Assembly (NCBI GenBank): GCA_964234715.1
Contig: OZ174275.1
Source: Podarcis melisellensis
Taxonomy: Eukaryota
Direction: 5' to 3' (one strand)
DNA length: 64,000 bases
In this document: piece by piece, positions 9,501 to 57,283 of the stretch
Layout of the letters: each line of letters opens with the position of its first letter
How positions within the stretch are numbered: the stretch's first letter is position 1
Translations under genes and position numbers: made by a program
Notes under the pieces: model-generated
The model's input: only the letters and a program-made list of their open reading frames with translations
Databases searched by the model: none
Told to the model about the DNA's origin: nothing

Positions 9501-10789
9501 TTAATGAGTCCCAGTCCTTTAGGTGCAGAACTGCCAACTGGACATTATTTTACTGATATGTCTAGTAAAAGCATATTCTGGTAGTTAAACAGTATATAGG
9601 CTTCTGAAAACCCCACTAATCTGTCTCAACAAAACCCTAGGCTATCGAGCTTCACCTGTGATCACTAGTCTATGTAGCAAGCCTCATATGTGACTCAGGA
9701 ATGTCCACTCTGACTCTCAAAGACTATGAATGGATCACTAATACTAATGTACATTATGCACTCCTGCCCCATAACCATCCATATTCCAAACCTTAACTTA
9801 CTTACGTGGTGCCTTTATCTATAAACGTATCACATCACAGCACAACTTTATGGGCATTTACTCAGAAGCAAGTTCTACTGTGTTTAATGGGGCTAGTAAG
9901 CATATTTAAACGGAACAGAGTGTGACTTAATTCTGAACACCAGCATTTATGGGATTGCACTGCACCTACTGACTTCTTTCTGGCTCCTTGTACCATCAAA
10001 ATGTAACTCCTCTTCACATCTTGTATTTCTGAAGCTCTGTTCGTTTTGGATCCTCATATACACTTGCCAGATCACATCAATTTATGCATCCTGGCTTTTG
10101 TGTTTTGCCCTGCATCGCAGTAGATTCTCTTAGACCTCATGGATATATAGAGAGAAGCCTGGGAATGGAATGACTCATAATTGCTCAGAATTTAGTCTTG
10201 CAAAACATCCTCCTTCCACACATGCACTGCCACAGTTTTGTGCTAGATACATCGGATTGAAATTCACAACGCAGGTGATTCATGTATGCATTATTAGTTA
10301 TGGTAACTATCAGGCACATGGCCCCTTTAAGAGAAAAAGCTATGACCCAGGATGCAGGCTCTTGGAGAGCTGACTCAGAAGGATGGAGAAGCTGCTCGAA
10401 TCAAGGCCTTGCCACTTGCTAGATGGATGTCGGACTTTGAGCTGCCTCATTGCTGAAGCTCCAAGCTCCAGCCTTCCTGAACTGAAGAAGCAGCCCAAGC
10501 CATTATTAATGGCACTAGGTGATAATTTTGGCACATTACAAGCATGTTGAATAGCACAACAATACACTGCGCAGAGGCAAATCCTAGGTTTGGGATACTT
10601 ACCTCTTTAGTGGTGGGGAAAGAAAGAGGTTTTTCTCGAACATACCCACTCCCTGGCTGGTACACACTCCAGGGAAGAGGATATTTCCCATCTGGGAGCT
10701 CAAGAGGCTGGAAGTGCTTGGTTGTTGTCGATTCATAATTGTCCTGAAGGAGCTTCCTGGTTTCGGAGAAAATAATAAGCATGAGAGAC

Positions 10790-10841
<52 letters not shown>

Positions 10842-13800
10842 TTATACCCTACCCATCTGGCTGGGTTTCCCAGCCACTCTGGGTGCCTTCCAACAGAATA
10901 TTAAAATACAATAGTCTATTAAACTTCCCTAAATTCACAGCATCTGAACTTAAGAAACACAGTGGATTTTAATCAGGTTATGTTTAGGCATGTTAGAATT
11001 GTGCTCTAAAGACAGCCATGCTTTCTATCTCCTAAAGTGATGCGTTAGTCCAGGCAACCCAAAAGGTCACTGTCTTTGGTCCTTCCAGTCATCTACACTG
11101 CATTCATAATGGATACCACGGTGAAGTGCCAAATGCAATTGCCTTGCCATAGTCTTTGTTATTATGCTTTGAGGGAGTACAAGTAAAGCAAATGCAAGCA
11201 TGTCACTGACTCAGAGGTGACATGAGCATTATGAGGATGTGATTATGTTTCACAGCTTTCCCCAATCTGGTACCCCCAAAATGCTCTGGGCTACAGCTCC
11301 CACCTGCCAGAACCAGCACAGCCAATCATCAAGGGTGGTAAGAGCTGGAGCCCAAAACGTCTGGAGAGCAGCGGGTTGGGTGGTATGCAAACCACAAGAC
11401 AGTTTCCCTGTTCTGAACCATCCCAGTTAATTTCCACAAAGTATACGACCAATACCTACCCCACAGTCGGATTATCTAATTTGTCTAGGCTTGGCTTGTA
11501 GTGGACAACGGGACGGTAATTGGTTTTATATCCTGCTCCAGAGTGGATGCTAGTCCGAGGACGAAACCCTGCTTGACCTGGCAAAGGAAAGGGAGACAAT
11601 GGCAGATTTGTATTGCCTATTTATATCTTCACTTACTTACTGCATTTATAAAGCACCGTTTTCCCACTGCACACTCAATACAGTTTACAATATAAAGTAA
11701 TAACTAATTGTCAATTCAGGTAGGTAGCCATGTTGGTCTGATGCAGTCGGGGGGAAATAAATTGTCCAGTAGCACCTTATAGACCAACTAAATTTGTTCT
11801 GGTATAAGCTTTTGTGTGCATGCACCAGAATAAACTTAGTTGGTCTATAAGGTGCTACTGGACCATTTAAAAAAAAAAAACTTTTTAAAATCTAATTGTC
11901 ATGACACAGAGGGAAAGATGGGGAAGGAAAAGGAAAACCAAGCAAATTTGAGTATACTAACTCTTGCATGATTGGAGCAAGGTGTTACATAATGTTCAGG
12001 TGGGATGATCACTACAGCAGAGGAGTGGAGGAGCTACATGGCAGTTGACCCCAACCGAATCAAGAGAGATGCCGTGGGGCCTCCCTTTGGAGCAGCTGCA
12101 AATAGCGGCTGTTCCAGGAGGACAGGAGCCAAATGGTAGTTTGTCTCAGCTAGGCTGATAAAGGGGTCCTCACCTTTCCCCCTAATGCACCCGGTATGAT
12201 GGCTCCAGATGGAAGCTACTCTGGTAGGAAAAAAGGCAAAAGGGAATTGGTGCCAGCCTAGCTGACGGAGGGGGCCTCACTGTCATTTCTCTCTCTACAA
12301 AAGCCTCTGCAAGAATCAGTTCTGGAGGATGGAAGCTTCATGCTGGTTAGAAGGTGGGAAGGGGTGGGGTTTCTCCAAGAACATTCTTGTCATCTTTGGT
12401 GCTTTGGCCTATGATAATATCTAAGCTTCAAGCTGGGGCTGGGAAACTGGTGGCTCTCCAGACATTGTTGGACTACAACTCCCATGATCCCTGGATATTG
12501 GCCATGCAGACTGGAGCTGATAGGAGCCCAACAACATCTGGAGGGCACAGGTACCTCAGCCCTGGCTGTGGTAAGGGGTTCTGACATGAAATGTGTCTAA
12601 CTCGAGGCATCCCTGTTACATGTGTGCCCAGCGCATGCATATCTACAGTGTTGTCAAATTGGGGCACGATGATGATTTAGTAGGAAGCAGCAGCAATAGT
12701 GGAACATGGATGGGCCTAACTCAAGTGATCCTGTTGTTTCAACAGGGACATGTTTCACTGTTTCCAACTGAGTTAAAATAGGAAATTACAGCACTGCAGA
12801 CACTGCCTATAACAGAATGTAAGCAGCTTGGGAACCAGGCAGGGGCAAAGCACTTTGAGATAAAGAACACAACCTCTGCATAGATATGCCTGGGAGAAAA
12901 GTTATATCTCAGGTGAATTTCACTCCAAACAATTCTTGAGATACATGGGAGGTAGCAGCATAAGCAAACTGCCTAGAAAACTCCATTGAGCTCAGTGGCT
13001 CCCTGAGCAAACATGTTTAGAACTGAGTTGTTTGTTCTGGGTACATTCAGATGCAACACTCTAAAGGGCTTCTTGCTTCACACAACCTTCCAATGCTTGC
13101 AGCAAACTTTTCATCCAAACATGGTTTGTGCTTGCTTGAAAAACCAGGATCAGACAAGCCTTGGGTTTCGGTTCAGCGCACATTGTAGTTTGCTACTTAA
13201 TTTCTTTTTTTGAAATCATTTTTATTTGATTTTATGAATGCAAATTAATTACAATGCCAAATACATATCCATAAAGAGATATTTCTCTGAATCTCGCAAC
13301 TTCCCCCCATGGGTCCTAATGTCAAAAATCCCAACTGCATATTATTTCATAGTCTTATGTTTTATATCTATCCATATTGTCCATAATATTTGTTACATTA
13401 CAAGTGGGGTTAAAACCCTGCCAATGTTTTCATCTGCTTCAGTGGTCTCCTAAATACATTATTAACTTTTCACATTCTTTCTTGGATTTCTTGTCTTCTT
13501 GGTCTCTGAGTTTCCTGGTCAGTTTTGTCATTTCAGCTGAGTCTCACAGCTTAGTTTGCCAGTCCTCTCTGGTAGGAACTCTTCCTTCTTTCCATCTCTT
13601 GGCTAGTAGCATCCGTGCTGCTCTTGTCGCATACATGAAAAGTATTTTCTGTTCCTTTAGAATGTTGGTACCTATAATTCCTAATAAAAAGGCTTCTGGT
13701 TTTTTAATAAAAGTTTTCAATTTATTTTGCATGGGTTCCCAATAATCAAGAATCAAAAGTTACTAAATGTGGCACATGATGGAAGCTTGAATCTCATTAT

Positions 13801-14017: not shown

Positions 14018-17000
14018 CTTCTCTGAAGATACAGAGGTGGATTTACTGATGAAAGGTTTCCCTGGAGGAATAGAAATGGAAGATGATTGACCACTAATCA
14101 TTCTGGATAGCAGGAATGCTGTTCAGCCTCTGGACAAAGAAATCAGTCTGACTTGAAGCAACTGTTCATCTGCATTGTGTGCATGTCTCCTTAGAAACAG
14201 TGAGGTCACACACACAGCATTGTGATGTCACAGACTCAGGATTTTTAAAGGGGGCTAATGATACAAACCCGGCCATTCGTGGTCTTAATACATCAGGGTC
14301 AGGTCTTAAACGCTCCTTATTGGTTGCAGGTGCACTGTGGCTCAAGTGAAACAATAGAACCAATTCCTTCCACAAAAATGGAGATACAGTACCAGAATAT
14401 ACCATTTTACCTGAAGATTGTAAAAATATTCAACCTTGCTATTCTGTTCCAATTGGCAAGTAAGACACCCTCAGGGAAATCCCTGTTGAAATGGAGGGGA
14501 ACCACACAAGAGTAGGGTGGCACTTTTCCTTTTTAGAGAGGCTTTTAGAGAAAAGCTTCCAGAAGGATTTGAAACACTGAAGATCAGGTAAAATGTTCAG
14601 GGATCTCCCAGTACTGGGTGGGTGGGTGTGAGTGTCCTTCCTTCTATGAATCAGGAACCAGTTCGTATGATAGTCCCCACCCCATGCTGTAGCACATGGA
14701 TTCTGCACACTCCACACAAAGCACTAGCTAATCTGTACCCCTCCCACAATTTCTGCCTGTCCTTTTTCTAGAACTCTTCTATTGCATCTTTCTTGCTGTT
14801 CTTCTGCTGTCAATATAGGAGTGCTTGTGGTGATTGTAGCACTGCACTATTATCAACATGTTTTCAATCTATCCACCTCACATTTACAATAACCTCTGAG
14901 TGGGAAATTATTCGTTTCCAAACCTCCATTTTGTGTCCATTGGTGAGCAGCTGTGACGAACCACTTTTTCTTATTTTTCCTTCATAAATTCAACTGCTTT
15001 GTTGTGAAGTGCCACAGAGAACTTTCCATTTTAATTTTCTCCATCCTTCCAACACACCTGAAGTGCTATACATGTCTTGACAAAATATATGGCACCTGTT
15101 AATAGGTCAGTTGAGAGGCCACCTTACTTCTTATATACACAGCAGATTATTGTGTTCTGCAGGAGTCTCCCTCAAGTTCCAAAGATCTTAGAATCCCAGT
15201 TAACAGTAGCTCAGAGGAAGGCTTTCAGTCCTGCTGCCCCTGTTCTGTAGAACAGCATTTCTGTCAAGATATGGCAGAGGCCATTTTTTGCACATTCCAG
15301 AAACAATTGAAAATATGTTTGTTTTGTTGGAGAAATTTCTCACAGACAATTTAACCAAGCTTTCCCAGCTGGCTGAAGAGGCCTCTCTCTGCCTTAGATT
15401 TAAAAGCAATATGAGTGAATACCTATCTCTAGGGTTTTTTTTTCATTGTTAGTTTTAAAAGCAATTTTTAGCTGTTTTTATTATATCCTGCATTGCAAGG
15501 GGTTGGACTATAATAATAATAATATTTATTTATATCCCGCCCTCCCCAGCCGAAGCCGGGCTTTTGCATGGGTTGTATGTTTTGTGTATTGTCTACAAGG
15601 GGGGGATGGGATAGAAAATTACTTATTGCCATTCACTGCCCCTTTTGTCAGGAACACTGACACTAAGATTTTTACCTTCTTAGTAAGTTATGTGTCTAGG
15701 ACACATGCCTTTTTACCATAAGAACTACTGCAAAATTATTAACAGTGGTTACAGACTATTCTGCCCATCTGTCTAGTCTGGCTGCTGGCTCCCTTGTTCC
15801 CTCCTGGGCAAGGGAAGCCAGGAAACAGGACAGGTGTGCAATAGACCCCTCCTGCCACCATTCCCCAGCCACTCATATTCAGAACCATCCTACCTCTGAT
15901 CCTGAAGACAGGATGTAGCCACCATGACTAGATGCCAATGACAGCCTTATCCTCCATGAATTTATTTAATTCCCTTTTAAAAAACATTAAATCGAGCAGC
16001 TATCACTTTGTCTTTTGGTAGTGAATTCCATAGTTTAACCATACGCAGTATGAAAAATACTCCACTTTCAGAATTAAGAGTCCCGAAATGCTAGGGCCAT
16101 TCCTTGTAAAGCTTTTATTGGCTGCCCTTTTCCCCAGCCTTTTCCCACTCTTCTGTATCCTTTTTTGGGCAAGACAACAAGAACTGCACACTGTATTTTA
16201 AAGTGTGGACACACCACATATTTGTATGAAGATGTTTCCTTTCGTAACAATGCAAACACAGAATTAATATTTTCACGCAGCTGTCTCAACATTTGCACTG
16301 AGCATTTCCTGGTTGGTCAATATCAGCTCAGACCCCATCAGCATATAGGATCTTTTTGCCCCAACGTGCATCACTTTACACATAGGTGGTCATTGTTGTG
16401 CTTGGAGTGTTGGACTAGGACCTCGGAGACCAAGCTTGAAAACCCTGCTCAACCATTAAGCTGACTGGAAGCCACAGCCTCAGAGTCTAACCTACCACAC
16501 AGGGTTGCTGGGGATAAAATGGGGAGGAATTGATCCATGTACACTATCCTGAGCTCCTTAAGTGGAAATATGGGATATAAATGGAATAAATAAATGAACT
16601 GCATTTGCCATTTTAATGCCTATTCAGCCAGTTCCACTGGGAATCCCATTCTGTTTCTATTGACCTGAATAATTTGATGGTCTCAGAAAATATCCATCAT
16701 TGTAGGAAACATTGCTGTACACACCAGACATGTGCATACACATATCTGGGAACCCAGCAAGAGAAATGAAATGCATACATATGTCCTTACACAGGGTTGT
16801 GCACAGAGTGTAGGAGAAAGACCTAAATCAGGTATTAAACCACATGACCACATCCTAACAGATTCTCCAAAAACAGCAATTAGCCATTGCCCCTTATCTT
16901 GTTGTTTTTCTAAAAAATAATATTTCCAATCTTCCGAGCACAGAAAAGGGGGCGGGGGAAGGAATATTTAACTTATGTACAGAAGCATAGTTCAGGGTCA

Positions 17001-17265
17001 GACCATGTTTTGTGTCCAAAATATCTAAAGTTCAGTCTCTGGTAGCTCCAACCAAAAAGGTCTTAAGATTGCAGAGTTGGGGAAATCCTTGACTAGTCAC
17101 TTCCAGTCAAAGTACTGAGCCAGTGCAGTGCAAGGGAGACCAAAGGACACTGCAGAGTAGTTTGTGAGACAACATGCTTCTTCCTCACACAAAGCTAAAT
17201 CCACCATGGACAGCAGCCTGTAGCCACCAACCCCATTTCGCCTGTGAGGATGGTATTGTCCTTAC

Positions 17266-17400
17266 CTGTCCCAACCAGCGAGGCACTACTTGTTGGCTGA
17301 TGGTAGCAAGCAGAACTAGATGTCCAAAAGGAACGAACCATTCATTTATTTAAGGAACTGAAGTTGGGAACTTGACGGACGAATGCAGAAAGCTGAAGTC
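17266..17400 (-). other. SAXO4: Putative non-coding first exon (5' UTR) of SAXO4
   Basis: Strong minus-strand donor CAG|gtaagg at 17266/17265, just downstream of tandem RFX motifs. The first coding exon has an acceptor only 5 nt before its ATG, so an upstream exon is expected. TSS is approximate. Confidence 0.55.
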
Positions 17401-17409
17401 TAGCAGCAT

Positions 17410-17436
17410 GTAACCTAGCAACCAGCACCTAGCAAC
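17410..17436. promoter_or_regulatory. Tandem RFX X-box-like motifs, likely SAXO4 promoter
   Basis: GTAACCTAGCAAC (17410-17422) and GCACCTAGCAAC (17425-17436); CCTAGCAAC is a classic RFX half-site. Confidence 0.65.
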
Positions 17437-19009
17437 TAGCTCGACAACATTGCTCTCCTTCCAATGGCCTTATAGTTCAGAGGGTATTGGGAGCAACTGC
17501 AGGGGCCCTGGGCACATGCCCAATACGTACAGGAAATGGTTCTGATTATTTGGATTCCTAAATATAGCCCTTGAGGGGTTGAGGTCTGTGTTTCCTGAGC
17601 CATTGTCCCATTGTATTCAAGTTGAGCTACTAGATAGGAGCTGGGGAGGTATGCAGCAGTTGAACAAGGTAGAGTCACCAGAATCAGTGCTGCCACCGCT
17701 CCCAGGTCCGTAAAACATAGAACAGTACCAAGTGGGCAGAAAGGAACATGTGTAAGGCTGTGTGCCTACTAAATGTCTGTAGTTAAAGCTGTGCAGTGTA
17801 ATTCAAGTGTAACTTTAGATGTCCGGCACACAACTCTTGAGAATTTAAGCCTTCGCCACCATTATCCCATCTCCCAATGTTCTGCATTTGTATCTGCGAA
17901 ATAATATTGAAATGTTATTGTAAAGTCTTAGCAATATGAGTTGCGGGTTTCAGATAGCTCAGTTTTGGTGCTGTATGATTCTGTTGCTTACCTAGGACTA
18001 AAATAAGTGTATTTGTGTTATATTTTACTCATGTCATTGAATGTGGCATTGCTTGACACAGAATCTCTGCAATCTGAACTCTGACACGGAAGAGAAATCT
18101 CTGAGCATACAAAATTAAAAATATGTAAGTTACACATCACTTTTGATCAAGCCTGCATGTGAATATTTAGTATTGAGGAAACATCATCAACATGCTTATA
18201 ATGACACCATGTGGTAGTTTAAAGGTAATGCCATAGACTAGATGGCTGCAAAGAAACATGTAACCTTAAGCAAGACTTTTAACGTTCTGTGTGATAAGGG
18301 GCGGGGGGGGGGGGAACCAACTCTAGGAGGGCCAAGCTGTATTTCAAATTGTCACACAGCTAGCAAGTTTTAATAGGATTTTTTAAATTTAAAAAAGTAC
18401 ATTACATAAAACATCTTCTGCAGAAACACCTGGGTGTCTGAAAGTGTTACTTATATGATTATTGAAGAAGTCACTGCTGGCTAGAAGAAAAAGTAGTTAT
18501 GTATCCTAGAACAATTTCAAACACCTGTTTTGAAAATACCTGACTCCCAGTAATTGACTGAAAAGTGGAAAAGAGCCTAACAGGGTTAGACACAAGCCAC
18601 ACAGTACTGTTTTCTTCTTTTTGCACCATCAACTTCTAAAAATAGAATAGCTAAAGTTCATTCAGCTACGAATGCTAGCAGTCGATTGGGTGAAAAAAGG
18701 AAATACAAGCAGACTGAATAAACAGTGTATGTTTATGAAAATTTATGAACAGAGACATAGGCTGATTTATTTGCTTTTTTAAGTATTTCACATAAAATTT
18801 TCTAATGGAAGGGTGATCCCCTTTGGAATAAGGAATTTGTAGTGAAGAATCTTGTTTTTTCAGCAAATGGCACACATTTTTGTGTTCTGGGAAATAATAT
18901 TCTTGTAAGTTAAATTCTACTTTCAGCTTCTAATTTTTTGTTCTCATTTTGTCTATGTTGAGAACTGCCTTGTGACCTTTGAATGAAAGGCAGTATAAAA
19001 ATGTAATAA

Positions 19010-19210
19010 ATCATAGAATTGGAAGGGTCCCAAGGGTCATCTAGTCCAACCCCCTGCAATGCTGGAATCACAGCTAAAGCATCCATGACAGATGGCCATC
19101 CAATCTCTGTTTAAAAACCTCCAAGGAAGGAGAGTCCACCACCTCTCATGGGAGTCTGTTTCACTGCCAAACAGCTCTTACTGCCAGAAAGTTTTTTCGA
19201 ATGTTTAGTT
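19010..19210 (-). mobile_element. CR1-type LINE 3' fragment
   Basis: ATCATAGAATTGGAAGGGTCCCAAGGGTCATCTAGTCCAACCCC is the reverse complement of a CR1 terminus. Confidence 0.7.
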
Positions 19211-21325
19211 GGAGATATTCATTGTTTAACAGTCTATTGTGTACTTCTATATTAAACTTTGCTTGGTATAGCAAGTGGGTGGGAATTATTCTACATCTGA
19301 GGGTGGGGGGAGACAGTGTGAGTATTCACTAACTGCCAAACACATCAAATTACAACAACTACAAAGGACAGACAGTATCCATTTAATGCTGCAGCTACCA
19401 CTATATCAAACAGTAGCAAATGAGGGAAGAGGAGCGAAATGAATAGACACCGACTATAAAGGATAGGGTCAGCGGGGGGGGGGGGGAATTATAACCATGT
19501 GCCACTGGTTTTTACTGACAAGTGCCAGCTAAAACCTTGAGTCCCAAGTTGAATTAAGGTAGCTGGGGACCCTGGCACAATTCCCAACATACGACTTTCT
19601 TCCCCCCACAAAAAACACATAAGGTACCACAGAATAGGAGCTGCCGTCCATTCTATGCAGGAATTAGGCCCCTCTGTGCATCCACTGTCACCGAGTAGCA
19701 GTAATTACATCTGCCTGTTACCAATGATGGTAGAGAAGGAATGCAGGGCCAGTCCACTGGGACAGCTGAGAGATCAGTAACTTTTGGCGCCTCCTTTCCT
19801 TGCATTTTCCCATCCCAGCTGGTCATTAAAGCAACTTGAAAGCATGGATTTGAACCAGAGTTTGCCTATTTCCTCCTAGCTCCCTCCATTTCTTTTTGTG
19901 TCATTTCTTTTTAGATTATAAGGCTGAGGGCATATATAGCGATTTTAATGATTTGTAAGCTGCTCTGCGAGCCTTTTTTGGCTGAAGAGTGGGATTTAAA
20001 AAATCTTTAAATAAATAGGAAACACACACGCACACTGCCAAGGACATACACGAGGGCAATATGCAAGGACCAAATCTTCCATATGCAGCTTGTTAATGTT
20101 GGCCTCATTGATCTACTGAAGATGTACTAACAAACAGCACCAAGAATAAGAATAGTCTTCTAGGTTAGGGACACAGGGTTGTAGCAATTGGACAAAGGCA
20201 GTAGCAAATAAACCTATCAAGCAGAATGGAAGGAAAGTGATGGGCACATCCACCAGTTCATAGGCTGACACAGCTGAAAACTGGTAAGTATATCCAGAAC
20301 TGCACTTGTGGGGAGGCCTGAGGCAACCCCATTGCTGTCATGTGACTGCATGGAGTCAGATCACTGCACCAACTCCAGCAATTGGCTTTAGGAATGTACC
20401 TTCAGCATCTAAGATGTCCAGTAATGAATTACTTATATGGGGTTGCTATCCATTCATTATTGAAAATACACTTATAGCATAAAGAGTACTATAGACTTCC
20501 ACAAATCTACGATTCTCAATCATTCGTTCACCTTTTGGCCAGAATCATACAATACAGAAATCTGCCCAGGAATCCTGGAACTGAGCAGAATATAAAATAA
20601 TACTACAGCTGTATAAGAATAATGATAATGATAATTTATTATTTATAACCCACCCATCTGGCTGGGTTTCCCCAGCCACTCTGGGTGGCTTCCAACAGAA
20701 TATTAAAAACAATACAGTGTCAGACATTAAAAACGTCCCTAAACAGGGCTGCCTTCAGTTGTCTTTTAAAAGTAAAATAGTTGTTTATTGCCTTGACATC
20801 AGCTGGGAGTGTCGTACCTTTGAAGTCGAACAGAATCCGTTCCGGAAGTCCATCCAACTTCTGAAACGTTCAACTTCCAAAGCGCGGCTTCTGATTGGCT
20901 TCAGAAAGCTTCTGCAGCCAATCGGAAGCCGCAGAAGCCCCGTCAGATGTTTGGCTTCCTAAAGAACATTCGAAAACCAGAACACTCACTTTCAGTTTTC
21001 AATTGTTCAGGAGCCGAAACGTTCGACTCTCAAGGCATAAATCACATAACTGTGATTTGTTATGTATAATTTAACAACCATGTGCATTTCTCAATTAACC
21101 AGAACACACAACAATGTATTTTGTTTTTATCAATCAGCCTGCAGTCCTATACCAGTGGGATTGCTGAAGTGCATTCTGAGTCAGAAAAGGTACTCTGTTA
21201 ACACTTCTATACCTGTCTTCTCAGAAGTGTTGCATTGAATTTAATGGGAGCTATAACCAAGTATCTAAAGGACCACACATCCTTTTTGGGGGGCAATTAG
21301 TCTTCAAGAAAAAAAGCACTGAAGC

Positions 21326-44359: not shown

Positions 44360-45460
44360 TGTTTCCGTAGGTTAGAATCAGATGCCCTGGTAAATGTGTC
44401 AAGGGCCCAGTCTATATATTGCAATAAGCCATGGTTACTGTGAACTAGTAGCATGCTAATGCAAACTGCTCAGTAGCTGCCAGTTTGCTGCTGCCCTGCC
44501 ATGAATGACAGCAATAATCTGATCAAGACACAATCCACAAGCCAAAATTTGTTCTTGACTTACTGACCATTGTTCAAGAGAAACAAGCTGTGATTCCAAT
44601 GTGCATGTTAATGACAAGCCAATCTCCATGGCTTATTGCTCCATGCCATGGGAGAAGCGAAGTGGGAGTGCTTGGGCAGTTTTGTTTTTAAGTTTGTGCA
44701 GAAAGCTACTTTTGCCCTTCCGGATTGTATTGATTGTGTCTGAGGCTGTACCTCTGTAAGCATTAAACTCAGATTCAGTCATCATTGGTGTGTTTGATTT
44801 ATGGAATCCCTGATGAGCCGAGCTATGACTCACAGACGTAACTATCTCTTTGAAGAGTTTTTACCGTCTCTGTGTTCATGTTTGCTGGTCTTGTTTGCCT
44901 TTTTGTAAAGCAAACCAATAAACCCACCAACAAATCCAACTGACTTATATTACTTTGAATTCTTAGACCTAGCATAAGGGAGAGAAATTGCAAAATAATA
45001 ATAATAATAAAAATAGTTCAGATCTTTTATTTCAAGAGGGGCATCACAGACTAGTATTGGTAGAATAACTTCTCTAACTTGAAAATCAGCCAATTTTTTC
45101 CAGTGGCAATCTGCCTTGGGTGCCCTGGAATAAAAAGTGGAGTAGAAACTACAAAAATAAGTAGAACATAGCCTTGCAATCTCACCACCCTCTTTGCTTT
45201 ATGAATGTGACTAGCACCTAAGGTGGCGATGAGTCTGACTTGAGAGTAAGTTTGATTCAGTGGATAAAGTGCTGAGTCTAGTCCAGTTCAACCATGAGCT
45301 AACACAAGCCTGTAGCTTTGGTTCCCTATTGCATGTGGAAATAACTCTGAATTCCCCATGGAGTTACAGTCCAGGGTTAATGGGCAAAATTCTCAACAAA
45401 CCTCTTTTAAAGTGCTATAGAACTTACTAGCGTTTCCAATTTTGTTTTGTCTCTTTTTAG

Positions 45461-47435
45461 GAGCGTGGGAAGCATTCAGTGTTTTTATGGACTCTGATCT
45501 CCTCTCCTTAATCAAGACTAAAATATGGAGGCTTCTCCACCCCCTCCTTCCCACTGCCCTCTGCTCTTTCCGGACCCCTTGGAAGGGACTTTGCCTGCAG
45601 AACTCCATCTGGCACACCATGGTATTGGAACCTGAGCTCTGCCTGTGTGCTGTTGCTGCTGCTTGATGGAGAAGCACTGAATGACTTGGAGGGGGGGGGG
45701 TTGGTTGTCTGAGCCACCGTGACCAGGGGGCCACTTCAATCCATGGATTCTTGGACCCAAAGAGAATGGTGCTTTCCACAGAGGTCTCTCGCCTCTTTCC
45801 TTTCCGTGGCTTTTTTAGGAGCACTGGGGAAGGAGCCCATCCAGCTCGTCTCCTGCGAGAAAAACTGGTGCTTCAGCACAGTATGAGATGTCTGACCCTA
45901 TTCTCCCCGGAACTCGTGTCCACGGTCCACACTGCATTGTTTTCTTAGGCATCGAGGCATCCATTCCTCCTTAAATCTGATCCTTTTTCCAAAGCAGCTT
46001 CAGTCTCGCCCTCCAGCACCGTTGTACACAGCTTAGAAAACAGTATTTCCCTGCTAGGATGGAAGGCAGGCTGGCTGCTTCTTCGGGTCACCCCTCTTCT
46101 CCCTTCCTCCTTTAGTTGCGGGAAAATGTCACCTCCTTTCTACCTGGCTTCTTCTAGAGGGGCCTCCGTTGGTCAACCAGCTCGCAACGTTGAATCTCCC
46201 TTAAAAAATAGATCTGGCTACTGCAGGTCCGCTTTCCACTGATTTGCTAACCATTTTCCTCGCTTTGTTTCATGCAATAGCTGCTCCAGTTGTAACTTCT
46301 GATGTAAACCTTTGTTTCTGGGGCCAGCCCCTCCCAGATTGCCGCCTTCCTTGTTGTAGAGGAAGTGTTGTGAACGGAGACCATAGAATGGAACGGGGCA
46401 AAGTCAAGCTGGGGCTACCTGGAAGTTACCGAATGCAGCACACCCTAAGCATTTTTAAAATTCTATGTGATGTACTTGTTGAACGTGTTGATTTAAGGTC
46501 CAGAGCTTTCCTTGGCCCCAGCCTCCTTTTAAAAGGAGTTCCTTTTTGGAGTGGTTCACTCATGAGTTTGCTTCAGATAGCACCATACCTCACTGATCTC
46601 TGGCATGCCAGTCTAGGGAGACGATTAGAGACAGTGGGAGGCGTCTCTTCACACCACCATATTTAGCCGTGTTATGTAATCGTAAGTAGGGTTTCTGGAG
46701 CCACTCTAGTCACCAGGCAGCCCTTTGAGACCAGTTGCAGCAAAAACCTGCTTGTTCGGAGCATTATGGGACAAAAGCACCTGCAGAGTTCTTGATTAAG
46801 CTCTCATCTTTGAGTTGCAACCCTTCGGGTGTTCATTTTCAGCTTTCATTGCTCCATCCTAGCCTGAGCACCCAGTTACTTAAAATCAAGGTAACACGTT
46901 ACACCCTGGAATATGCAGTCTCCAGCAACTGGATCTCGGTGGTGAGGCCAAGCATCTGTTGTGTTCATGAACACTTAATGTGATTGTTCAGCTGCATGGT
47001 GAAGCCTCCCTTGTAGAAGGACCCTGTTTTGTCTCACAGAACAATATTGTGGACTAAGGCGGAGGGGGTGGTGTCTGGCAAAGGATGTTCTTGTGTGATG
47101 TGGCACCTCCTTTTGTACTGTTGATCACAGAGGTGCTCAGCTCTAAATGTGGTTTTTAAAAAAAATAAAACGGGGAAAGTTGTGTAAGCAATGGAGTGAC
47201 AACTTAAACTGTAAAATATATTAAAAATTGATGATTGGAAAAGTTGCTTTTTACATAATGGACATTTTTAGTTTGTTTTGAAATAATGGAAGTAAGAAAA
47301 GAAAGAAATGGAACAACAGAAACATAGCCTTGGTTCCTCTCAACTCACCCACCCCTGTTCTTCGTGATTTGATTTGTTTGTCTTTTTCTGATAGGTTGGA
47401 AATTGTGTAATAAACTTGATGATATTGTCAATCTT
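45461..47435 (+). other. CPSF7: CPSF7 terminal non-coding (3' UTR) exon
   Basis: Strong acceptor ttttgttttgtctctttttag| at 45460 pairs with the donor at 43158. AATAAA at 47164-47169 and 47409-47414, with a U/GU-rich downstream element. End is approximate. Confidence 0.7.
47409..47414 (+). terminator. Probable CPSF7 poly(A) signal
   Basis: AATAAA flanked by TGTA motifs, with U-rich sequence downstream. Confidence 0.65.
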
Positions 47436-48254
47436 TTATACTGCATTGTATGGCTTCTTTTCATTTTGTAACTATTTTGAATCCTGGGTGAGCTGTTTTC
47501 TAGAATCTCCACTAAATATGAGCAGGGGGGGATGGAAAAGAAGATAGATAGATAAGACAGGTGCCATATTTTGGCTGGGTAGTAGCCCTTGTACAGCCAT
47601 GGTTTTATGTATTGCTAAACTAGTTCCAAACCCACTTTATGTACACAGATTAAAATGATTTTTTAAAAGCTTCTATCTCTCAGTCATCTCCATTTAAAGG
47701 GGAGTGTCTGGTAGCAAGCCAAGGAAAGATTTGAGACCCTTGAGAATTTCTGCCAGTGTGAAATCAGTACACTGAATGAAGATTCGATGCTCAGCATCAT
47801 TTTAAGTAGCTCCTTTAAAAAATATTTGCTCTGGAAAACGTGAACAGAAATCACAGGTTTCATAAAAAGGGATAAGCATTATGCTGAACAGAGATGGGGA
47901 AATGAAGCCACGGTGGAAACAGATGAAACTCAAACCCTTTGAAAGGGGATTGTGCCTTTCGCGTGAAATTGAATATTACAGGCAAGGAAATATAATAGCA
48001 TATAAGGGCTTTCTGTCTATGGCAGGAAAAGGTTCAGTTACAAGAATATTGTCCTGATTGCTAGTGGTATTCAGTGAAATGTTTCTGGGGATCATAGGCT
48101 TGCCCAGATGGTTTGTGTTTCACCTTCCTGAAGGTTTGTCATACAAGGGCATTTGCCTGTGACTGGCGGGTGAGGTGGTAGTACTTTCAGAATGCAGCTT
48201 GAGTGGTGAACAGTCTGTGGGAGGGGCTTCATGCTGAGTGGGTGGGTTTACCTG

Positions 48255-48267
48255 GTTGCTAGGTGAT
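48255..48267. promoter_or_regulatory. RFX X-box-like motif upstream of the fascin-like gene
   Basis: GTTGCTAGGTGAT (reverse complement ATCACCTAGCAAC), ~95 bp before the ATG. Confidence 0.45.
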
Positions 48268-48360: not shown

Positions 48361-48666
48361 ATGACATACTCACTAGAATTTGGCCTTGTTAATGCGGCCA
48401 ACCGGTACCTGACTGCTGAACCTTTCCGTTTCCAGGTGGCAGCCACAGGCAAGCAACTGAAGCCTCGCCAGTTGTGGGTACTGCAGTTTGTGAGCCCACA
48501 GGGAGCTGGGGCAGCTGGCCCAGGAGAAGGGGCTGGCCAAAAGCTTCACCTGATCAGTGCACTGAAACGCTACTTGGCGGCTGACGCAAATGGAAAAGTC
48601 ACCTGTGACCAGGACAAACCAGGGCCTCAGACCTTCTTTCTCTTGCATCAGTATCCAGATGGCAAG
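48361..48666 (+). CDS. Fascin-like exon 1
   Basis: Good Kozak ACCATGA; MTYSLEFGLVNAANRYLTAEPF...HQYPDGK|gtgctg. Confidence 0.9.
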
Positions 48667-51600
48667 GTGCTGTCTCTCACCCAGGCACAAGCATCCTATC
48701 TCTCAAGTGTAGCTTATGTCCGATATTATCGGGCTGGAATTCTGGACAAAGAGGGTTGGGTGTGGTTGGGTGGGTGAGACGGAGGGCAGAAGGTAGGAAA
48801 ACAATGCTTAAAGTTGCCTCAATAGGGCCTCAATAGGGCCTATTCCGCTATTGCCCAAATGTGGGCCTCTTGTTTTGCTTACAAATGTTTTTTACAATTA
48901 AGAGGCAGAAATGAGGGCAGAATTGAGCTTGATTTGCAGACTAGTTTGCTGTGGTGAGAAGCAGGGTCTTTTCTTAGTGTGCAAGTTTTTAGATTCTTAT
49001 GGGTAAGTCCAGGCAGCAGATTCCTGTAAAGTGCATCAGGAAGAGTGTAAAATGTCCCTGGACTTCCCCCACCCCACCCCCATGGTCTCCTTGGGAAGCC
49101 AGTCACATGAGCCAAAGCTCTTTGCCCCTGTCGGCCAAACAGTATGATAGTCAGCCACTATGGGCTGAAGGGGAGAGAATGTGTTTGAATAGCTTATTTG
49201 AGTCCCTGTGCCTGGTGTATCCTTCAAGGTGCCCTAGCCACTTCCCATCCACAACTGGAAACAACTGTTGCACAATGGAACTTGGGTGATCATGGCAACT
49301 CCATAAGCCCAAAGGTGTAACGTAATTGGTGTAATGATACCTGAATGTTATTCTGCCGTGTTCTTTGCTCTCATTGAGACTGTTCCTGCTTTTCTTGTCT
49401 TGGGCAATGTAGCTGACCAGACATCCTTCCCTCCCTGCAGGTGTCCTTGCAAAATGAACAGTCCAAGCGCTACCTGGGTGGAGCAGAGGACAACGTCACT
49501 TGCTTTGCCCAGGCTGCCACCGAAACTGAAAAATGGACCCTCCACCTGGCTGTGCACCCCAATGTTGCCATGTACAACCCCAACAGGAAGCGTTATGTGC
49601 GGTGTGATGATAAAACAGGGGTGCTGCGCTGTGACCGTGACATGCCCTGGGGAGCTGAATCAGTCATCACTATCTACTATGATTTCAGAGGTGGGTGGTG
49701 GCATTTTCCTATTTTGTTTTCAATTGATATGTGCATTTTTCTCTCTAATACTGTAACACACATCTCCCCCCCCCCTTTTTGGGGGGAGCGTGTTAAAGAA
49801 GCAAAAAATTCTGCTGTAGGGTTTCTCACACACAGACACAGTTGCAGATGAGGACTTATAGCTACCATACTAACAAGAAAGTTGCTTCTTCTGAACTAAG
49901 GATTGTTTAAAGTTTTCTGTTATCCTCTCCAACTATGGAGCAGACACCTGGGGTAAGTCTGAACACCTGGAAAGACTTGAGAAATTTGAGAGATGGAGAA
50001 AGTCTGTACCGGTCACAGGCTTTCTCCTCTCACAGTGAGAAAGTTGCTACTTTATTCTACAGATGTTTGTCTGCTTGTGATTTTACCTATACATGAGGAT
50101 TTCTAAGTGCTACAGGTGGGTGGGGTGGCCTGGGAAGGCAGTAAGTGCTTCTAAGTGGAAGGTCTTAATTCAAAAAGTTTGAGTGACACTGCCTTATTTA
50201 CACATCTCTATCCAAAAGCCACCCAAGAACCTTCTAAGATAGTCCTCTGTTATTGATGTGTGAAAAAGTTCAGTTTGAGTCATTTGCATCTCCTCCAATA
50301 GGTCTGGAGTCCAATGGTGAGAGAAGGCAATTTTCCCCATACATACCAGGTGAATTCAAATTCTGTTTACCCAAGAAGTCACTGTGGCTGGCAGGAATTT
50401 TGGTTTCCTTAACATCATTAATTAGCTTGGGTAATTCTTAGAACTACTAATTGCCCTATGCAAGACTTTCTGGTAAGTTAGACACCAGTGCAAACTTTCC
50501 AAATAAGACAAGAAAGGGAATTGTCTGTACAGAGAAGTTTCCAAGTGCAAATCCTCTTTCCTGACCGTATTAATGTTGGAGGTTCCCCACTCTCTCACAC
50601 ACACTTTTAAGTGAAATTGCACACTAGGCTAAAGAATCTAATACAACCAGTTTTTAAAACACACATGTATTATGGATAAAGGTGTGTATTAGTGCAGATG
50701 AGAACATTACTTCAATCCCAATCTCAGCCTGCATGTGCCCATGGCACATCTCACTATACCTGGGTTGGGGCAATGGCCTCTAGCTTTATCAAGCACACAC
50801 ATAAACCCCCAAAGTAACTATGCAAGAAAAATAGGGTGTAATCTACGAGGAAACAAATGCAGTGTCAGCACCACCAACGCTGTACAAAGCTGAGACCCAA
50901 TGAACGTCAACTTGCCCATCAGAACAAAGCACAGGGGGCTGTTTACACACATGTACAAATGATATATGAGATTCTGGGCAAGGGAAATACAATGGGAAAT
51001 GTTAAGGGCGAACAGGACTAGGGTACTCTAAAGGGTTGGTGTTTGGAACTGCAGGCAGGGTGGGCCTGTGTGGCAATTCTGCAGTGAAACAAGCATCAAC
51101 TCTGATGCTACTTTGTAAGACAGTTGATTTGAAGATTGTTTTCCAGGACTAAACATCAAGCTGCTGTCAACCTCTCATTTCTCTCGCCTTTGTCTCCAGC
51201 AAAGAAGTATGGATTGAGGAATGGGGCTGGCAAACTGTTGGCTTCCAATGGCTCACTGGTGCCAGATGTTACCCCACAAACGTTGTACTCCCTGGAGGTG
51301 CATGGCGGCTTGGTCGCTCTGCGGGATGAGGAGGGAAAGTACTTGACTGGGCGAGAGGGTAGCATGAGAACCGTAAAGATGGACAAACCTGGACGGGAGG
51401 AACTCTTCAGCATGGAATCTAGCCCTGCCCAGGTCTCTATGCGCTCTTCTTCTACTAACAAGTTCATTTGCTGCAGGCCAGGTAAGTCAGGAGAAAACAG
51501 CACTATCTATATTGCATTGCACTTTGTGAAGCCTCTGAAGCTGATTGGCTGTTCCTGTCTGATGAGATAGAATGTTTGTGATCATTCCACCTGCTCGGAA

Positions 51601-54600
51601 AATGAGGCACAGTGGTAGTCCACATTCTGCAAGCAATGGGGCAGTTGTCAGTTTGGTTGGGTAAAACTGAGATAAGACTGACTCAGGAGGCAGGGTGAAG
51701 GCTGGGAGGAGTTCTTAGAAGGTAGGTAAGCTTAGATGCTGGGACATCAGAGGCAAGATGGATGAAGAGAGCGTGCAGAAGTAAGAAGCAGGAAAAGTGC
51801 ACATACAATTGAAGTAGCAAGGATCCAGTAAGATTACGGTCCCTGAAAAAACCCACAGCATTTCTTATTAAAAGTGGTGTGACAGAAGTGCTAGGGAAGC
51901 TTGCACGTGACGTTTTGTGCTCTTAAACCAGCCTGCCTCCAAAGATAAAGATAGGAAGGTCCAAATGATCCTAGGTCAGTTGACACACAGACAGTGCCCT
52001 CATTCTCTGCACGATGTTTTCCTCTTTCAATCCACAAAACACTGATTTCAGCCTGCAAGGAGTGGGCAATGGCATATGTAGGAATGCTAACTTAGGGTGT
52101 TTCTTCCCTGCCCCCTGCAGGTGCTGATCTCTACGCCAATGCTATGGCTGTTGGCAACACAGAGATCTTCCAGGTGCTGTTTGATGACACCACAAAGAAG
52201 GTCTGCTTCCGCAGCCACAGCGGCGCATATATGTCCTTGGTGAGTGTGCCTGCCACGCGTTACGAGGAACAGCAGTGATCAGGCAGGACCTAACTATGTT
52301 TCCTAACTACGGAGAAGGACGGCAGCTCGTAGGTGGTAGAGCACCTGCTTTGCATGCAGAAAACCCCAGGCTTTTTTCAGCCACAGCCACTCATTCCAGT
52401 CTTGTCCCCAACCTCCTTCCGACTATATTCTACAATGAGCAACACTGAGACTAAGGAGGGAGGAAGCTGACAGGCAGTCCCACCCCACGACTGGTTGTGA
52501 GAATGTGGGGACTGATCAAAGGCAGAGTGAGGATGGTAGGGCAGGGCCCCTTTTGCCCAAGTGGATCAGCCTCCACTGGATACATCTGTGCCCAGATTGT
52601 GGTGCACCAACTCAATCTGGAATTCTTTTAAATGTGAGCAAGGAGGTGGGTGAGCTGCATCCTCGACACTTGGCTGCGAGCATTCACAAAAATTGTGGCC
52701 TGGTTCAAAAAACAAAACGACTTAAGCTTGAAACTTGATGTAGTAGAGGCTTTGCCACCTCAGGTGCTCACCAACACTCCCCAGATGAAGAAGATATATC
52801 TGCGCCGTGTGTGTATTAATACAGAAAGGCAGGCTGCAAATCAAGAGGATAATAATATAGCAAGCAGGGAACTGATAAAAGGAGGCTTGTTAAATAGCAG
52901 TAGATAGCTCTTGGTCCTGGACTTGTTTGTTAATGTTAGTAAGGACTGTCTCAGTCCTTTTCCAAAACATTTTTGTCAACTTTAGTGTGTGGGGGGGGGG
53001 AGTTACTCTATTCTACAAAGCAAAGCAGGGCATTATACACAATCCTCCTTGTGGAAAAGTGAAAAATTGTTTTTTGTACACTGAGGATGGAGAACCTGTG
53101 GCTCTTGAGTTGTTGTACTCAAATGCCTATTGTCCTTGATCATTGGCTGGCAGTTATTACTCCAACATCTTCAGGGCCTCAGGTTTCTCATCCCTGCCAC
53201 AGATGAAATATGTAAGAGTGCAGTAGGAATGCACAACTTCCTGAACAACCTCTTAAGAGAAAGCTAACTGCTTAAGCCTGGAGGGCTGGAGACATCTTTT
53301 TCAGGTCTGCTATTCACTTACCTGGGAGTAAAAAAAGATGATCTTCTGGCTGCATTGTTGTTCATGGTGTGCACATACACTATCTGCTATGGACCATGGT
53401 CAGAAATTTTACAGACTTTTGTTGTGCTTCAAAACTTATACTGTCTACATCTAACATACCATTTAGAAATCTTAATAGTTTGGCTTCAGTCTGGGCTATG
53501 GTTCACATAGTGCAACTTGAAGTGTGAAGTCAACAAGAAAGTGGCTTTGAATAAATCCAAGGTCCACCACCATCCCTATCTTGCTGATGCTAGAAACCCT
53601 CCACTTTTGGAGGTAACTACTGCTGGATGCGGGTGGCGCTGTCGGTTAAACCACAGAGCCTAGGACTTGCTGATCAGAAGGTCGGCGGTTTGAATCCCCA
53701 CGATGAGGTGAGCTCCCGTTGCTCGGTCCCTGCTCCTGCCAACCTAGCAGTTCAAAAGCATGTCAAAGTGCAAGTAGATAAATAGGTACCGCTCCGGCGG
53801 GAAGGTAAACAGCGTTTCCGTGCGCTGCTCTGATTCGCCAGAAGCGGCTTAGTCATGCTGGCCACATGACTGGGAAGCTGTACGCCGGCTCCCTTGGCCA
53901 ATAAAGTGAGATGAGCGCCGCAACCCCAGAGTCTGTCATGACTGGACCTAATGGTCAGGGGTCCCTTTACCTTTACTGCTGGACTAACCTCCCTGGTATT
54001 GAGATGCTCATGCATTGCTGTACTCTTGTGTTGCATCACCCACCACAATGGGATTCTCAGTCTTGATGCAGCACCCAATACCTTCCACTGAAAATATATC
54101 AACATGGATCTCAGAATGTAGCTGATAAAGGGACTGCAGCAGGAGGTTTCTATCAGACAAAGTTAGCTGAAAGCACAAAAAGCACTTTCCAACGAATGCA
54201 TCCTGTCTTTTGCAGGGTCCTAATGACTGTATTAACAGCAATACTAAACAGGACAGGAATGTCTGGTTCGACATCCAGTACCAAGACCAAAAGGTGTGTC
54301 TCCGCATAGCAGACAAGCAAGTGTCCATGCGGCCCAATGGACAGCTCCTGGCAATTCCCAAAGCTGCAGGTACAAGTTGGTAGAGAGCTTCTCTTAGGGT
54401 GGGAAGAGAGACTGCACACTGCACACTGCCAGCTGAAAATTAGTTTTAGGTAGTTCTAGGGGAAAGGGAAAGGGAAGCGACAGCCTTGCCCTAAGTTCCT
54501 AGATAGCCTTCTAGAGGAATAATGTGGGGAAAGTGTATGCACAGAAACCAAGCTGTCCCTGGATATAAAATTGGAACATGGGGAGCCAACCTTAAGCTCA

Positions 54601-56247
54601 TCCCATGAAATGGCTTTTTAGACACCTCAAGGGCTTCTTGTTGGAAACCAGCAACCAAAACTTTCATAATCTTGCTCCTGCAAGGTGGAATGAGTTCTGT
54701 TTACACTCCCTTCCTTACACTTTGGAGTAGCTAACATCACTACAAATACAGCCTAGATGAAAGAGAAAAAAACACCCTAAGACTCACTAAAACACTGCCC
54801 CTCTGTGCATATAATTCTGGCCCCCAGAACTGCATACCAAGTAGGTTGACACTGCTTCTGTAATATGATCTGGGAAGCAGTCAGAGAATGAGTTCCAGTT
54901 TGGGGAAAACCACCACCAGAAATAGCTGTGCAGTTGTTGTCCATAGTGGTTACTTGAATGAACTTTGGGGCAAATGTCACTGACAGTAGAAATCGGGATA
55001 AAACCCAAGGGAAGAACAGTATTTGAAGTCCAAGCCATTAAAAGCTTTCTGTGCCATAAGCAGCACCTTGAATCAAGTCAGAAAGACTAGAGGGAGACAT
55101 TGTGAATTCTGGGCCCCTGTTACAACACGCAGCCTGGCTTCTCAGTGTGGGGCGATTTCTCCTGATCTTTAGCACTGAGGTTGACTTTCCCTGGGGAGCT
55201 GATTCCCTCTTGAGAGCAAAAGGAAGGGTGGCAAAAGAGTTCTCTTTGAAAGCCAGGTGCGGCCAATGCTAAAGGTTTCCCTTGTACCTTCAGGGAAGAG
55301 TGAAGATTTCCTGCTGGTGCTGGTGAACCGGCCACTGCTTGTCCTGCACAGTGATGCCGGCTACGTGGGTCTGTGTTCTGACATGAGGAAGTTGGAAGGG
55401 AACTGCGTCAGCTATGTTGCCAGCAGCCTGTCGCTCACCGAGGAAGGCTACTACAACTTCCAAGTTGGTTAGTATGTTTCCAGGTGGGACTAAGTATATT
55501 CCAAGGGGTTGGGGTCTCCTAGTATCTGTGTTGCGAGAGAAACATGACCTACTCATAAATGGGAGCTGCCATCAAAGGATTTTTATAAAAACAAGCCTAG
55601 TTTATACGTAGCCATAAGAGGGAGCCAAAACTTGCTTTCCCAAACCAAAACAATGCAAGAGAGCGCATCATCACTATTTCCCCCCCTTTGCCATTTGTTT
55701 TGCTCCATGACCCCTGGACAATAGTTTCCTAGGCCCAATTAAGGATAAACTACTGTTCAGGTTGGATGGCCATCTGTCATGGTTGATTTAGCTGTGATTC
55801 CTGTGTTTCAGGGCGTTGGACTAGATGACCCTTGGGTCCCTTATTATTCTAGGTGTCGGTCATGTTTTCACTTTATACATGGTTTCTTTCTAAACCATAC
55901 CTAGTATTGCCATGACAAGCACATCCCAATTACCTGTGATTCTTTTACCTCGTAAAAGTCGGAGAGATCCAAGAGCTGGTCTTGCCACGCCTCTACCTTC
56001 CCTGACCCTCACCCTTCCTTCCACTAATTCTGCCACTTGACTTGCAGGCAGCAAGTACTGGGCTCTGGATAACGATGGACAAATCTTGGTAAACAGTGAC
56101 CGTCCCAGCAATTTCACCATCCAGTTTGCATCCTCCAGCTGCCTGATCATCAAAGCACCCAACAACAAGTTTTTTGTGGCTGAGCAAGGAGGCCGACTAT
56201 GGGCAGGGGCTTCAGACGCATCTGGAGCAACACTGTTCCATTTCTGA
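48361..56247 (+). CDS. Fascin-family actin-bundling protein (four beta-trefoil domains), divergent paralog, 494 aa, 7 coding exons
   Basis: Exons 48361-48666, 49441-49690, 51200-51481, 52121-52239, 54216-54369, 55294-55467, 56048-56247 (1485 nt, no stops or frameshifts, all GT-AG). Collinear with fascin: FGLVNAANRYLTAEPF, RYLAADANGKVTC, RYLGGAEDNVTCFAQ, EKWTLHLAVHP, RKRY, DRDMPWG, VALRDEEGKYL, NGQL, LVNRPLLVL, KYWALD. Confidence 0.93.
49441..49690 (+). CDS. Fascin-like exon 2
   Basis: ccctgcag|VSLQNEQSKRYLGGAED...ITIYYDFR G|gtgggt. Confidence 0.92.
51200..51481 (+). CDS. Fascin-like exon 3
   Basis: ctccag|KKYGLRNGAGKLLASNG...KFICCRP G|gtaagt. Confidence 0.92.
52121..52239 (+). CDS. Fascin-like exon 4
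   Basis: cctgcag|ADLYANAMAVGNTEIFQVLFDDTTKKVCFRSHSGAYMSL|gtgagt. Confidence 0.92.
53625..53976 (+). mobile_element. Full-length Sauria SINE
   Basis: GGATGCGGGTGGCGCTG..GGTTAAACC head, CCTTTACCTTTAC tail, flanking direct repeat TACTGCTGGA (53618-53627 and 53974-53983); in fascin-like intron 4. Confidence 0.9.
54216..54369 (+). CDS. Fascin-like exon 5
   Basis: tttgcag|GPNDCINSNTKQDRNVWFDIQYQDQKVCLRIADKQVSMRPNGQLLAIPKAA G|gtacaa. Confidence 0.9.
55294..55467 (+). CDS. Fascin-like exon 6
   Basis: cttcag|KSEDFLLVLVNRPLLVLHSDAGYVG...GYYNFQV G|gttagt. Confidence 0.9.
56048..56247 (+). CDS. Fascin-like exon 7 (coding part)
   Basis: ttgcag|SKYWALDNDGQILVNSDRPSNFTIQF...GATLFHF*. Confidence 0.92.
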
Positions 56248-56273
56248 GAGCATCTGACCTTGCTCTTCCCACC

Positions 56274-56279
56274 AATAAA
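56274..56279 (+). terminator. Proximal poly(A) signal of the fascin-like gene
   Basis: AATAAA 26 nt after the stop, followed by TTTTTTCTGTGTG. Confidence 0.65.
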
Positions 56280-56670
56280 CTTTTTCTGTGTGGGCTTACT
56301 TCATGCTTATCTCAACTGATGCCCAATTGGCCCATGTGTTGGACCTCTTGGAAATGACCCTTCCTCCGTAGATCCTCCCTCACACAGGGCATACTTGAAC
56401 TCTAAATGAAAGCTCTGCTACCTACAGCAGACCCAAGCCAGGACCCTTTCATGTGAATTTCCTTATGCAAAAACTTTCTGTGCCTATGAGGTCCCTTCTG
56501 AACTGCCTTCATGCAGCTAGGATGATTTGCAAAGCCTCAGTTATCTTAAAGATGTGTACCTCTCTTCAGCCCAAGAGGGGTTCCCCATGCTTCTAGGAGC
56601 ACTGTTGTTCTTCCAGCGTACCAATGTTTGTCTGAAGCTCCACATAGCTACAGTAGTTTAAAAATAAATA

Positions 56671-56676
56671 TTTATT
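56671..56676 (-). terminator. Probable TMEM216 poly(A) signal (half of palindrome AATAAATATTTATT)
   Basis: Minus-strand AATAAA ~610 nt after the TMEM216 stop. Confidence 0.6.
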
Positions 56677-57283
56677 CCAAGGATGCAGTAGAAAACCAAG
56701 TATCACAAATTATCAATACACACCAATAACAACACTGATTTGGGGGGAAGCGGCACAAGGCCTGCTGCCCTTATCCCTACCCCCATTCAGGAAGAGGGCA
56801 CAGGAGGTAACACAACAATTAGGGAGGATGAGCAAGACTGCCCTCCTGAGTCACTGCACACATGCTAGAGTCTTGAGTTGTTAGAATGTACCACGCTGGG
56901 GAATTCAGAGGACACACCAGCTGCAGGCAAAGTCTGATTATTAGGTGGCATTCACTGGCCCATAGTCTTTTGACTTGCGAGAGTCAATTACCCAAGGTAC
57001 AACGTTGGAATGGATCAATCAGCGCCCTCCAGGAGGATTGCAAGCTTAGTTAGGGTGGGTGGGTCTGTCATCTCATGAAAACTGTTTCCAGACACTGGAG
57101 ACCCTGCTAATGGTGCTCTACCTGAATGAGCTTGAAATGAGAAGTTGAGCCGCCTTCTTTCAGCTTATTGGGGGAATTGGACCCACACCTCATCTTGTTC
57201 CAGCCACAGAAATGGAGGGTTCATGCAGCCTCTCTCCAATCTGAAGAGCACACGGTTCCATACATTGCAGCCCACAAAGGTTC

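Follow-up and report, generated by a model that had tools for sequence, protein, structure and literature searches.

A probable fourth vertebrate fascin lineage retained between CPSF7 and TMEM216 from sharks to lizards

The window, a stretch of 64,000 nucleotides of Podarcis melisellensis DNA that was analysed as a whole, holds an intact fascin-family gene between CPSF7 and TMEM216. We think it highly probable that this gene is a fourth vertebrate fascin ('FSCN4') and a lineage of its own. A 2020 review counts three vertebrate fascins (PMC7698196); a fourth, present since early jawed vertebrates and dropped by mammals, birds and apparently teleosts, would correct that count. It would also provide a natural experiment on fascin mechanism, with purifying selection acting on a protein that has done without the PKC switch and without the trefoil-4 contacts thought essential in FSCN1. 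Finally, it would bear on the origin of testis FSCN3 and on which actin structure of sperm or cilia was changed in mammals and birds.

The core claim is already catalogued, in RefSeq and by Hara et al. 2018, though uncharacterised, and the existence of the gene and its pattern of loss therefore come as less of a surprise. RefSeq models carry the label 'fascin-like' in many species, as the preliminary description of this DNA had guessed of automated pipelines. Table S10 of Hara et al. 2018 (PMC5901865) lists the lineage as the 'elusive' AmnPhylome_0002944_sub_003, fascin-like LOC102565591, and its alligator accessions, XP_006264658.2 and XP_006026114.2, are the same as those of the present orthologues. 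That survey recorded nine reptiles and the coelacanth, none of Xenopus, gar, zebrafish or stickleback, and zero orthologues among 112 mammalian and 68 avian gene sets, with FSCN2 as the paralog (PMC5901865). The entry is a table row only, with fascin unmentioned in the text, and comes without sharks, chimaera, sturgeon or basal frogs and without analysis of synteny, introns, promoter or residues (PMC5901865). Our literature search, which did not extend to the name 'FSCN4', found no study naming or testing the gene. New here are the range down to cartilaginous fish, the synteny, the intron history and an X-box in four species, and also a cassette exon in squamates, an intronless copy in sharks, and the loss of the PKC serine and of basic contacts in trefoil 4.

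Gene structure, transcription and selection

The features of the gene, all on the plus strand, are as follows.

48255..48267, +, RFX-type X-box-like site, 106 bp before the ATG, one mismatch to the pattern
48361..48666, +, coding exon 1, aa 1-102, most of beta-trefoil 1; equivalents of E27, F29 and K43 present, PKC serine replaced by Q32
49441..49690, +, coding exon 2, aa 103-185; R149-K150-R151 motif retained
50302..50349, +, alternative in-frame cassette exon of 48 nt, bounded by AG/GT; 16 aa into beta-trefoil 2
51200..51481, +, coding exon 3, aa 186-279; S274 equivalent is C276; clade-specific phase-1 intron directly before it
52121..52239, +, coding exon 4, 119 nt; clade-specific phase-0 intron directly after it
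54216..54369, +, coding exon 5; first bases joined to exon 4 in an RNA contig
55294..55467, +, coding exon 6; R398 equivalent is C398
56048..56247, +, coding exon 7 with TGA stop; K471 equivalent is V472
56274..56279, +, proximal AATAAA, candidate poly(A) signal
56663..56668, +, distal AATAAA, tail to tail with a TMEM216-strand signal at ~56670

Joined in frame, the seven exons give 1485 nt encoding 494 aa and a TGA stop, with zero internal stops; all six introns are GT-AG, in phases 0, 1, 1, 0, 1 and 1, and the start codon stands in a CACC-ATG context. The preliminary description had claimed exactly this, seven GT-AG exons with an intact 494-aa frame, a Kozak ATG and an AATAAA of the gene's own (at 56274), and the sequence bears it out. 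Its exon set was right as far as it went and missed the 48-nt alternative exon (50302-50349) as well as the X-box at 48255. The joined protein is identical at 493 of 494 positions to the RefSeq 'fascin-like' proteins of Podarcis muralis and P. raffonei. Searched singly, exons 1, 2, 3 and 7 each pass the cut-off of Pfam Fascin (PF06268), and exon 2 matches the solved fascin-1 structure with an E value of 7.5e-23. Intron 1 (48666/49441) has a weak donor and splits a Lys-Val pair at AAG/GTG. An element in intron 4, at about 53610-53980 of the window, looks like a Sauria-type SINE.

The gene is transcribed, with a strong difference between samples. One contig from a run of a close relative carries the exact joins 48666/49441, 49690/51200 and 51481/52121 at a depth of about 518, against about 5 for intronic contigs of the same run, and in a second contig of that run exon 4 is followed by exon 5. 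This run has a coded tissue, and its type, RNA, is the tool's guess; that it contains RNA follows from the first contig being spliced. Junctions 5/6 and 6/7 agree with the intron positions of orthologues and with the 493/494-identical RefSeq model. Another sample of the same study gave a depth of about 6, unspliced, and in two runs of another species coverage was low and unspliced. An exon 1 that reads on to a stop at 48777 is ruled out by the splice at 48666. We infer that the distal AATAAA at 56663 is used, since a 1025-nt contig starting in exon 4 would, if fully spliced, reach ~56620. On the two strands the poly(A) signals of the fascin gene and TMEM216 lie within ~10 bp of each other, tail to tail (window 56655-56690).

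Selection on the gene is purifying. In the expressing run four of the six best-supported exonic differences are synonymous, and against the tailed frog orthologue dN/dS is 0.19, with dS near saturation. RNA junctions and dN/dS were two checks proposed in the preliminary description: junctions 1-4 are seen in the RNA contigs of the related lizard, and against the turtle orthologue dN/dS is 0.23, not about 1. Splicing and dN/dS together led us to reject a pseudogene.

The cassette exon accounts for the RefSeq isoforms of 509-513 aa, which include it in Lacerta, Podarcis, Zootoca, python, Erythrolamprus and leopard gecko. It has no match in the non-squamate loci that were compared, and it is skipped in the sole spliced RNA contig seen. 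Before it was found, we had attributed the 510-aa models to a wrong exon-1 donor, an explanation that was then rejected. Across squamates the cassette lengthens beta-trefoil 2 by 16-19 aa, which often include an Arg-Arg-x-x-Ser/Thr-Pro run. We speculate that this run might serve kinases as a target in place of the lost control through S39 and S274.

Locus, ancestry and taxonomic range

In the window the neighbours are PPP1R32, SDHAF2, CPSF7 and TMEM216, so that the order which the preliminary description had given for human, TMEM216-CPSF7-SDHAF2-PPP1R32, was found; TMEM138 comes next, as in turtle. Turtle and sturgeon retain the order CPSF7(+), fascin(+), TMEM216(-), the frog fascin adjoins TMEM216, and the chimaera and white-shark fascin genes lie directly after CPSF7. 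Because this synteny extends from sharks to reptiles, the locus is as old as jawed vertebrates and the absence of the gene in human is a loss. The gene had been proposed either to have been lost in mammals or to have moved here in reptiles. The loss stands; the move is ruled out by the synteny in fish and frog, with the full order in sturgeon (and turtle) and part of it in frog, chimaera and shark.

Three further observations concern these loci. Two non-coding blocks in the CPSF7 3' region (45442-45810 and 47341-47482) are conserved with turtle at 70% and 85%, including a distal AATAAA. In turtle the annotated model begins with a first exon of 11 codons (locus 10001-10033), which is located 5' of the conserved X-box and was probably mispredicted; an in-frame ATG at about 10556 agrees with the remaining orthologues. 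At the frog locus a 275-aa gene is called between fascin and TMEM216 (16357-20057); neither Pfam nor the other loci compared gave a match to it, and it is probably spurious.

In a 28-protein LG+C20 tree without FSCN3, the CPSF7-TMEM216 fascins form one clade (100/100) on a stem of 0.96. The clade falls inside the vertebrate fascins (100/98) and outside both FSCN1 (97/96) and FSCN2 (100/99), so that the extra lineage claimed in the preliminary description holds with respect to these two, and the phylogeny it had called for shows no nesting in either. Its relation to FSCN1 is at most that of a weak sister (89/86, together with two cyclostome genes), and a position outside FSCN1, FSCN2 and the cyclostome genes is not rejected (AU p=0.24). 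One FSCN1-type protein from a metagenome, probably mammalian, figured in exploratory comparisons only and was dropped afterwards.

Introns give the clade marks of its own. Each of the six intron-bearing clade members mapped, from chimaera to lizard, has those at c.556 (phase 1) and c.957 (phase 0), whereas FSCN2, the two lamprey genes, amphioxus and Nematostella have neither. FSCN2, the lampreys and amphioxus instead have a phase-2 intron about 11 codons past c.957, which is the ancestral state. The c.838 intron is found in every intron-bearing fascin gene mapped. The c.1111 intron is common to the clade, FSCN2 and the two lamprey genes and is not found in amphioxus, and we therefore place a duplication at the DNA level after the amphioxus split. 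Introns and tree together date it between that split and the split of sharks from bony fish. The c.306 intron, which is intron 1 of the lizard gene, is confined to bony vertebrates: sturgeon and tetrapods have it and cartilaginous fish lack it, so that it was either gained in bony vertebrates or lost in chondrichthyans. Each of the two lamprey genes has several private introns; they keep the ancestral phase-2 intron and carry none of the clade's marks.

Orthologues are 79-96% identical in squamates, about 53-63% in turtles and 40-45% in sharks and rays, and are also found in alligators, the frogs Ascaphus and Discoglossus, coelacanth, sturgeon and elephant shark. Word-based searches of limited sensitivity found no member in birds, mammals or teleosts. 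In mammals, birds, teleosts and Xenopus the gene has been lost or, at the least, has escaped detection. An 'elusive' gene is one present in two or more reptiles and one outgroup and missing from mammals and birds. The gene shows this pattern, with members in reptiles, frogs, coelacanth, sturgeon and chondrichthyans and no bird or mammal match in the same sensitivity-limited search. Lepidochelys turtles have both FSCN2 and the CPSF7-TMEM216 fascin.

Sharks and rays have a second copy, which in white shark is intronless (locus 10001-11464) and on another chromosome. This second copy is intact across sharks and rays and retains S39; it is probably an old retrogene. The tree places the split of the two copies at or before the divergence of chimaera; the 63-row tree that includes the second shark copies is a quick one.

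Protein surface, promoter and putative role

The 493/494-identical Podarcis protein has an AlphaFold model with a mean pLDDT of 92, in which only a short Gly/Ala insert at about 48-56 is of low confidence, and the Varanus orthologue has a full-length PDB match (E about 1e-101). The protein is thus predicted to adopt the four-trefoil fascin fold. The collinearity with fascin over four trefoils that had been claimed agrees with the Pfam matches of four exons and with the TM scores of the predicted model to FSCN1, 0.81-0.91.

We took the actin contacts of fascin-1 from a cryo-EM preprint (10.1101/2024.01.03.574123). The lizard protein retains E27, F29, K43 (as R), R149, R151 and D168, and in FSCN1 numbering basic residues are present at 247, 250, 271, 353 and 358. 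The contacts of trefoils 1-3 are thus largely retained, and in trefoil 4 R398, K471, H474, A475 and V477 are changed. No clade member with sequence there is basic at 398 or 471; the other sampled fascins have K or R at 471. By sequence, binding site 1 is rebuilt in its trefoil-4 half. Mutation of R398 abolishes bundling by FSCN1 (10.1101/2024.01.03.574123). FSCN2 and amphioxus fascin also lack R398 itself, so that the clade protein may still bundle actin. The PKC site S39 is Q32 in the lizard and S274 is C276; both serines are regulatory and not required for membership of the family. S39 is kept in Ascaphus, sturgeon and the intronless shark copy, and S274 in sharks and coelacanth.

The X-box 106 bp before the lizard ATG has counterparts at about -91 in turtle, at -84 in tailed frog (a perfect match) and at -117 in sturgeon. 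Such sites occur in only 1-2% of 60-bp windows of those loci, so that three further matches are far beyond chance. In the shark and chimaera promoters the 200 bp next to the ATG hold no site with one mismatch or fewer. More X-box-like sites lie in the window at 24161 (the SDHAF2/CPSF7 promoter region) and at 61318 and 61650 (between TMEM216 and TMEM138); an RFX4-bound element has reportedly been described in human between TMEM138 and TMEM216. X-boxes close to start sites are bound by RFX2 in mouse testis, and RFX factors also drive somatic cilia genes (PMC4498915). Ppp1r32 and Fscn3 decrease in Rfx2-null testis, and in the RFX2 testis table Tmem216 and Ppp1r32 have 'yes' in the first flag column (PMC4498915). 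The site at 48255 would be a putative target of RFX binding, and the X-box and RFX2 data, taken with the sample-restricted expression, point to a role in spermatids, or else in ciliated cells.

We propose the following course of events. A duplicate would have arisen at the DNA level after amphioxus and before cartilaginous and bony fish split, diverged fast, and remained between CPSF7 and TMEM216. The conserved X-box would put it under RFX control, most likely by RFX2 in spermatids and otherwise in ciliated cells. The protein would probably crosslink F-actin by means of its conserved contacts in trefoils 1 and 2; the half of binding site 1 that lies in trefoil 4 would be remodelled, and in squamates the PKC off-switch would be missing. 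We lean towards such an actin-crosslinking role in germ cells or cilia, judging from promoter and residues.

The separate lineage might be real and this role wrong. The protein could be a weak or one-sided actin binder or a scaffold rather than a classical bundler, and the loss of basic trefoil-4 contacts throughout the clade, like the degraded R149 region of the Discoglossus and skate members, would fit that. E27, however, is invariant across the clade and F29 nearly so, the RKR motif is retained in the lizard, the lack of R398 is shared with FSCN2 and amphioxus fascin, and an invariant arginine four residues downstream of 398 could compensate. A fascin of somatic ciliated or sensory cells rather than germ cells would agree with the action of RFX on somatic cilia genes and with the coded tissue of the expressing run. 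Taken together, we regard these versions as rather unlikely. That the gene is a decaying duplicate or an annotation artefact we regard as next to impossible. The long stem branch and the repeated loss in other lineages could be read that way, but the frame is intact, the junctions are exactly spliced, dN/dS is 0.19-0.23 and orthologues are intact across jawed vertebrates.

Relation to FSCN3 and to known systems

The clade might instead be the ancestral-locus orthologue, or the parent, of mammalian FSCN3, if a copy had moved to ARF5-PAX4 and evolved fast and the parent had been lost in mammals. We consider this improbable. An elephant-shark cDNA of the clade gene, for which the literature yielded no tissue, was deposited as 'fascin-3', and FSCN3 presumably has an exon of 119 nt with a phase-0 intron directly after it, near c.960, much as in the derived intron of the clade; both points speak for it. 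Feature and fold searches of the ESM Atlas ranked 'Fascin', 'singed' and 'fascin-3' clusters almost equally and so favour neither side. Homology searches with exon 2, the turtle orthologue, a clade profile and one region of the protein (20 candidates for the last) gave no FSCN3 sequence. FSCN3 is also spermatid-specific (PMC7698196) and RFX2-dependent (PMC4498915), which fits the X-box. Against it, exon 5 of FSCN3 starts at c.1121 according to a published variant table; this boundary equals c.1111 here with one exon fewer before it, four rather than the five of the clade gene. Hara et al. placed zero human, dog or opossum genes in the clade's subtree (PMC5901865), and the block GCC1-ARF5-FSCN3-PAX4 is described as conserved in other vertebrates, with no species listed. 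The two loci differ, with CPSF7 and TMEM216 as the neighbours of the clade gene. We further assume that FSCN3 has no c.556 intron, and no c.306 intron either, and that it keeps a W where the clade has an invariant V. If it does lack the c.556 intron and keep the W, the two split before crown jawed vertebrates and would be sister paralogs, not one moved gene. Our literature search found no fascin phylogeny paper and no FSCN3 knockout or exon map.

A wider reading, which we offer only tentatively, makes the clade gene and FSCN3 two halves of an overlooked sperm or cilia branch of fascins with a shared derived intron and RFX control. Mammals would have kept FSCN3, and sharks to crocodilians the clade gene, which would bundle actin by a rebuilt site 1 without the PKC switch. 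If true, this would explain the origin of FSCN3 and give a slower-evolving model for its function.

Among known systems, Pax10 and FoxG2, cryptic paralogs lost in mammals and birds, are likewise fast-evolving early-vertebrate duplicates kept in reptiles or non-mammals. They are transcription factors, whereas the clade gene encodes a cytoskeletal protein, for which an origin in 1R/2R is only a candidate. FSCN1, a gene of five exons, likewise has four beta-trefoils, with about 35% identity, a TM of up to 0.91 and trefoil-1 and -2 contacts in common; it belongs to another clade and locus, and the lizard protein differs from it in its replaced S39/S274 phospho-sites and changed trefoil-4 contacts. 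FSCN2, at about 35% identity, shares the intron positions c.838, c.1111 and c.1285, but has the ancestral phase-2 intron near aa 331 where the clade gene has a phase-0 intron at aa 320, and the clade gene adds two 5' introns to the five-exon pattern of FSCN2. FSCN3 is likewise divergent, with an intron at the c.1111/c.1120 equivalent and probably a similar context of spermatids and RFX2.
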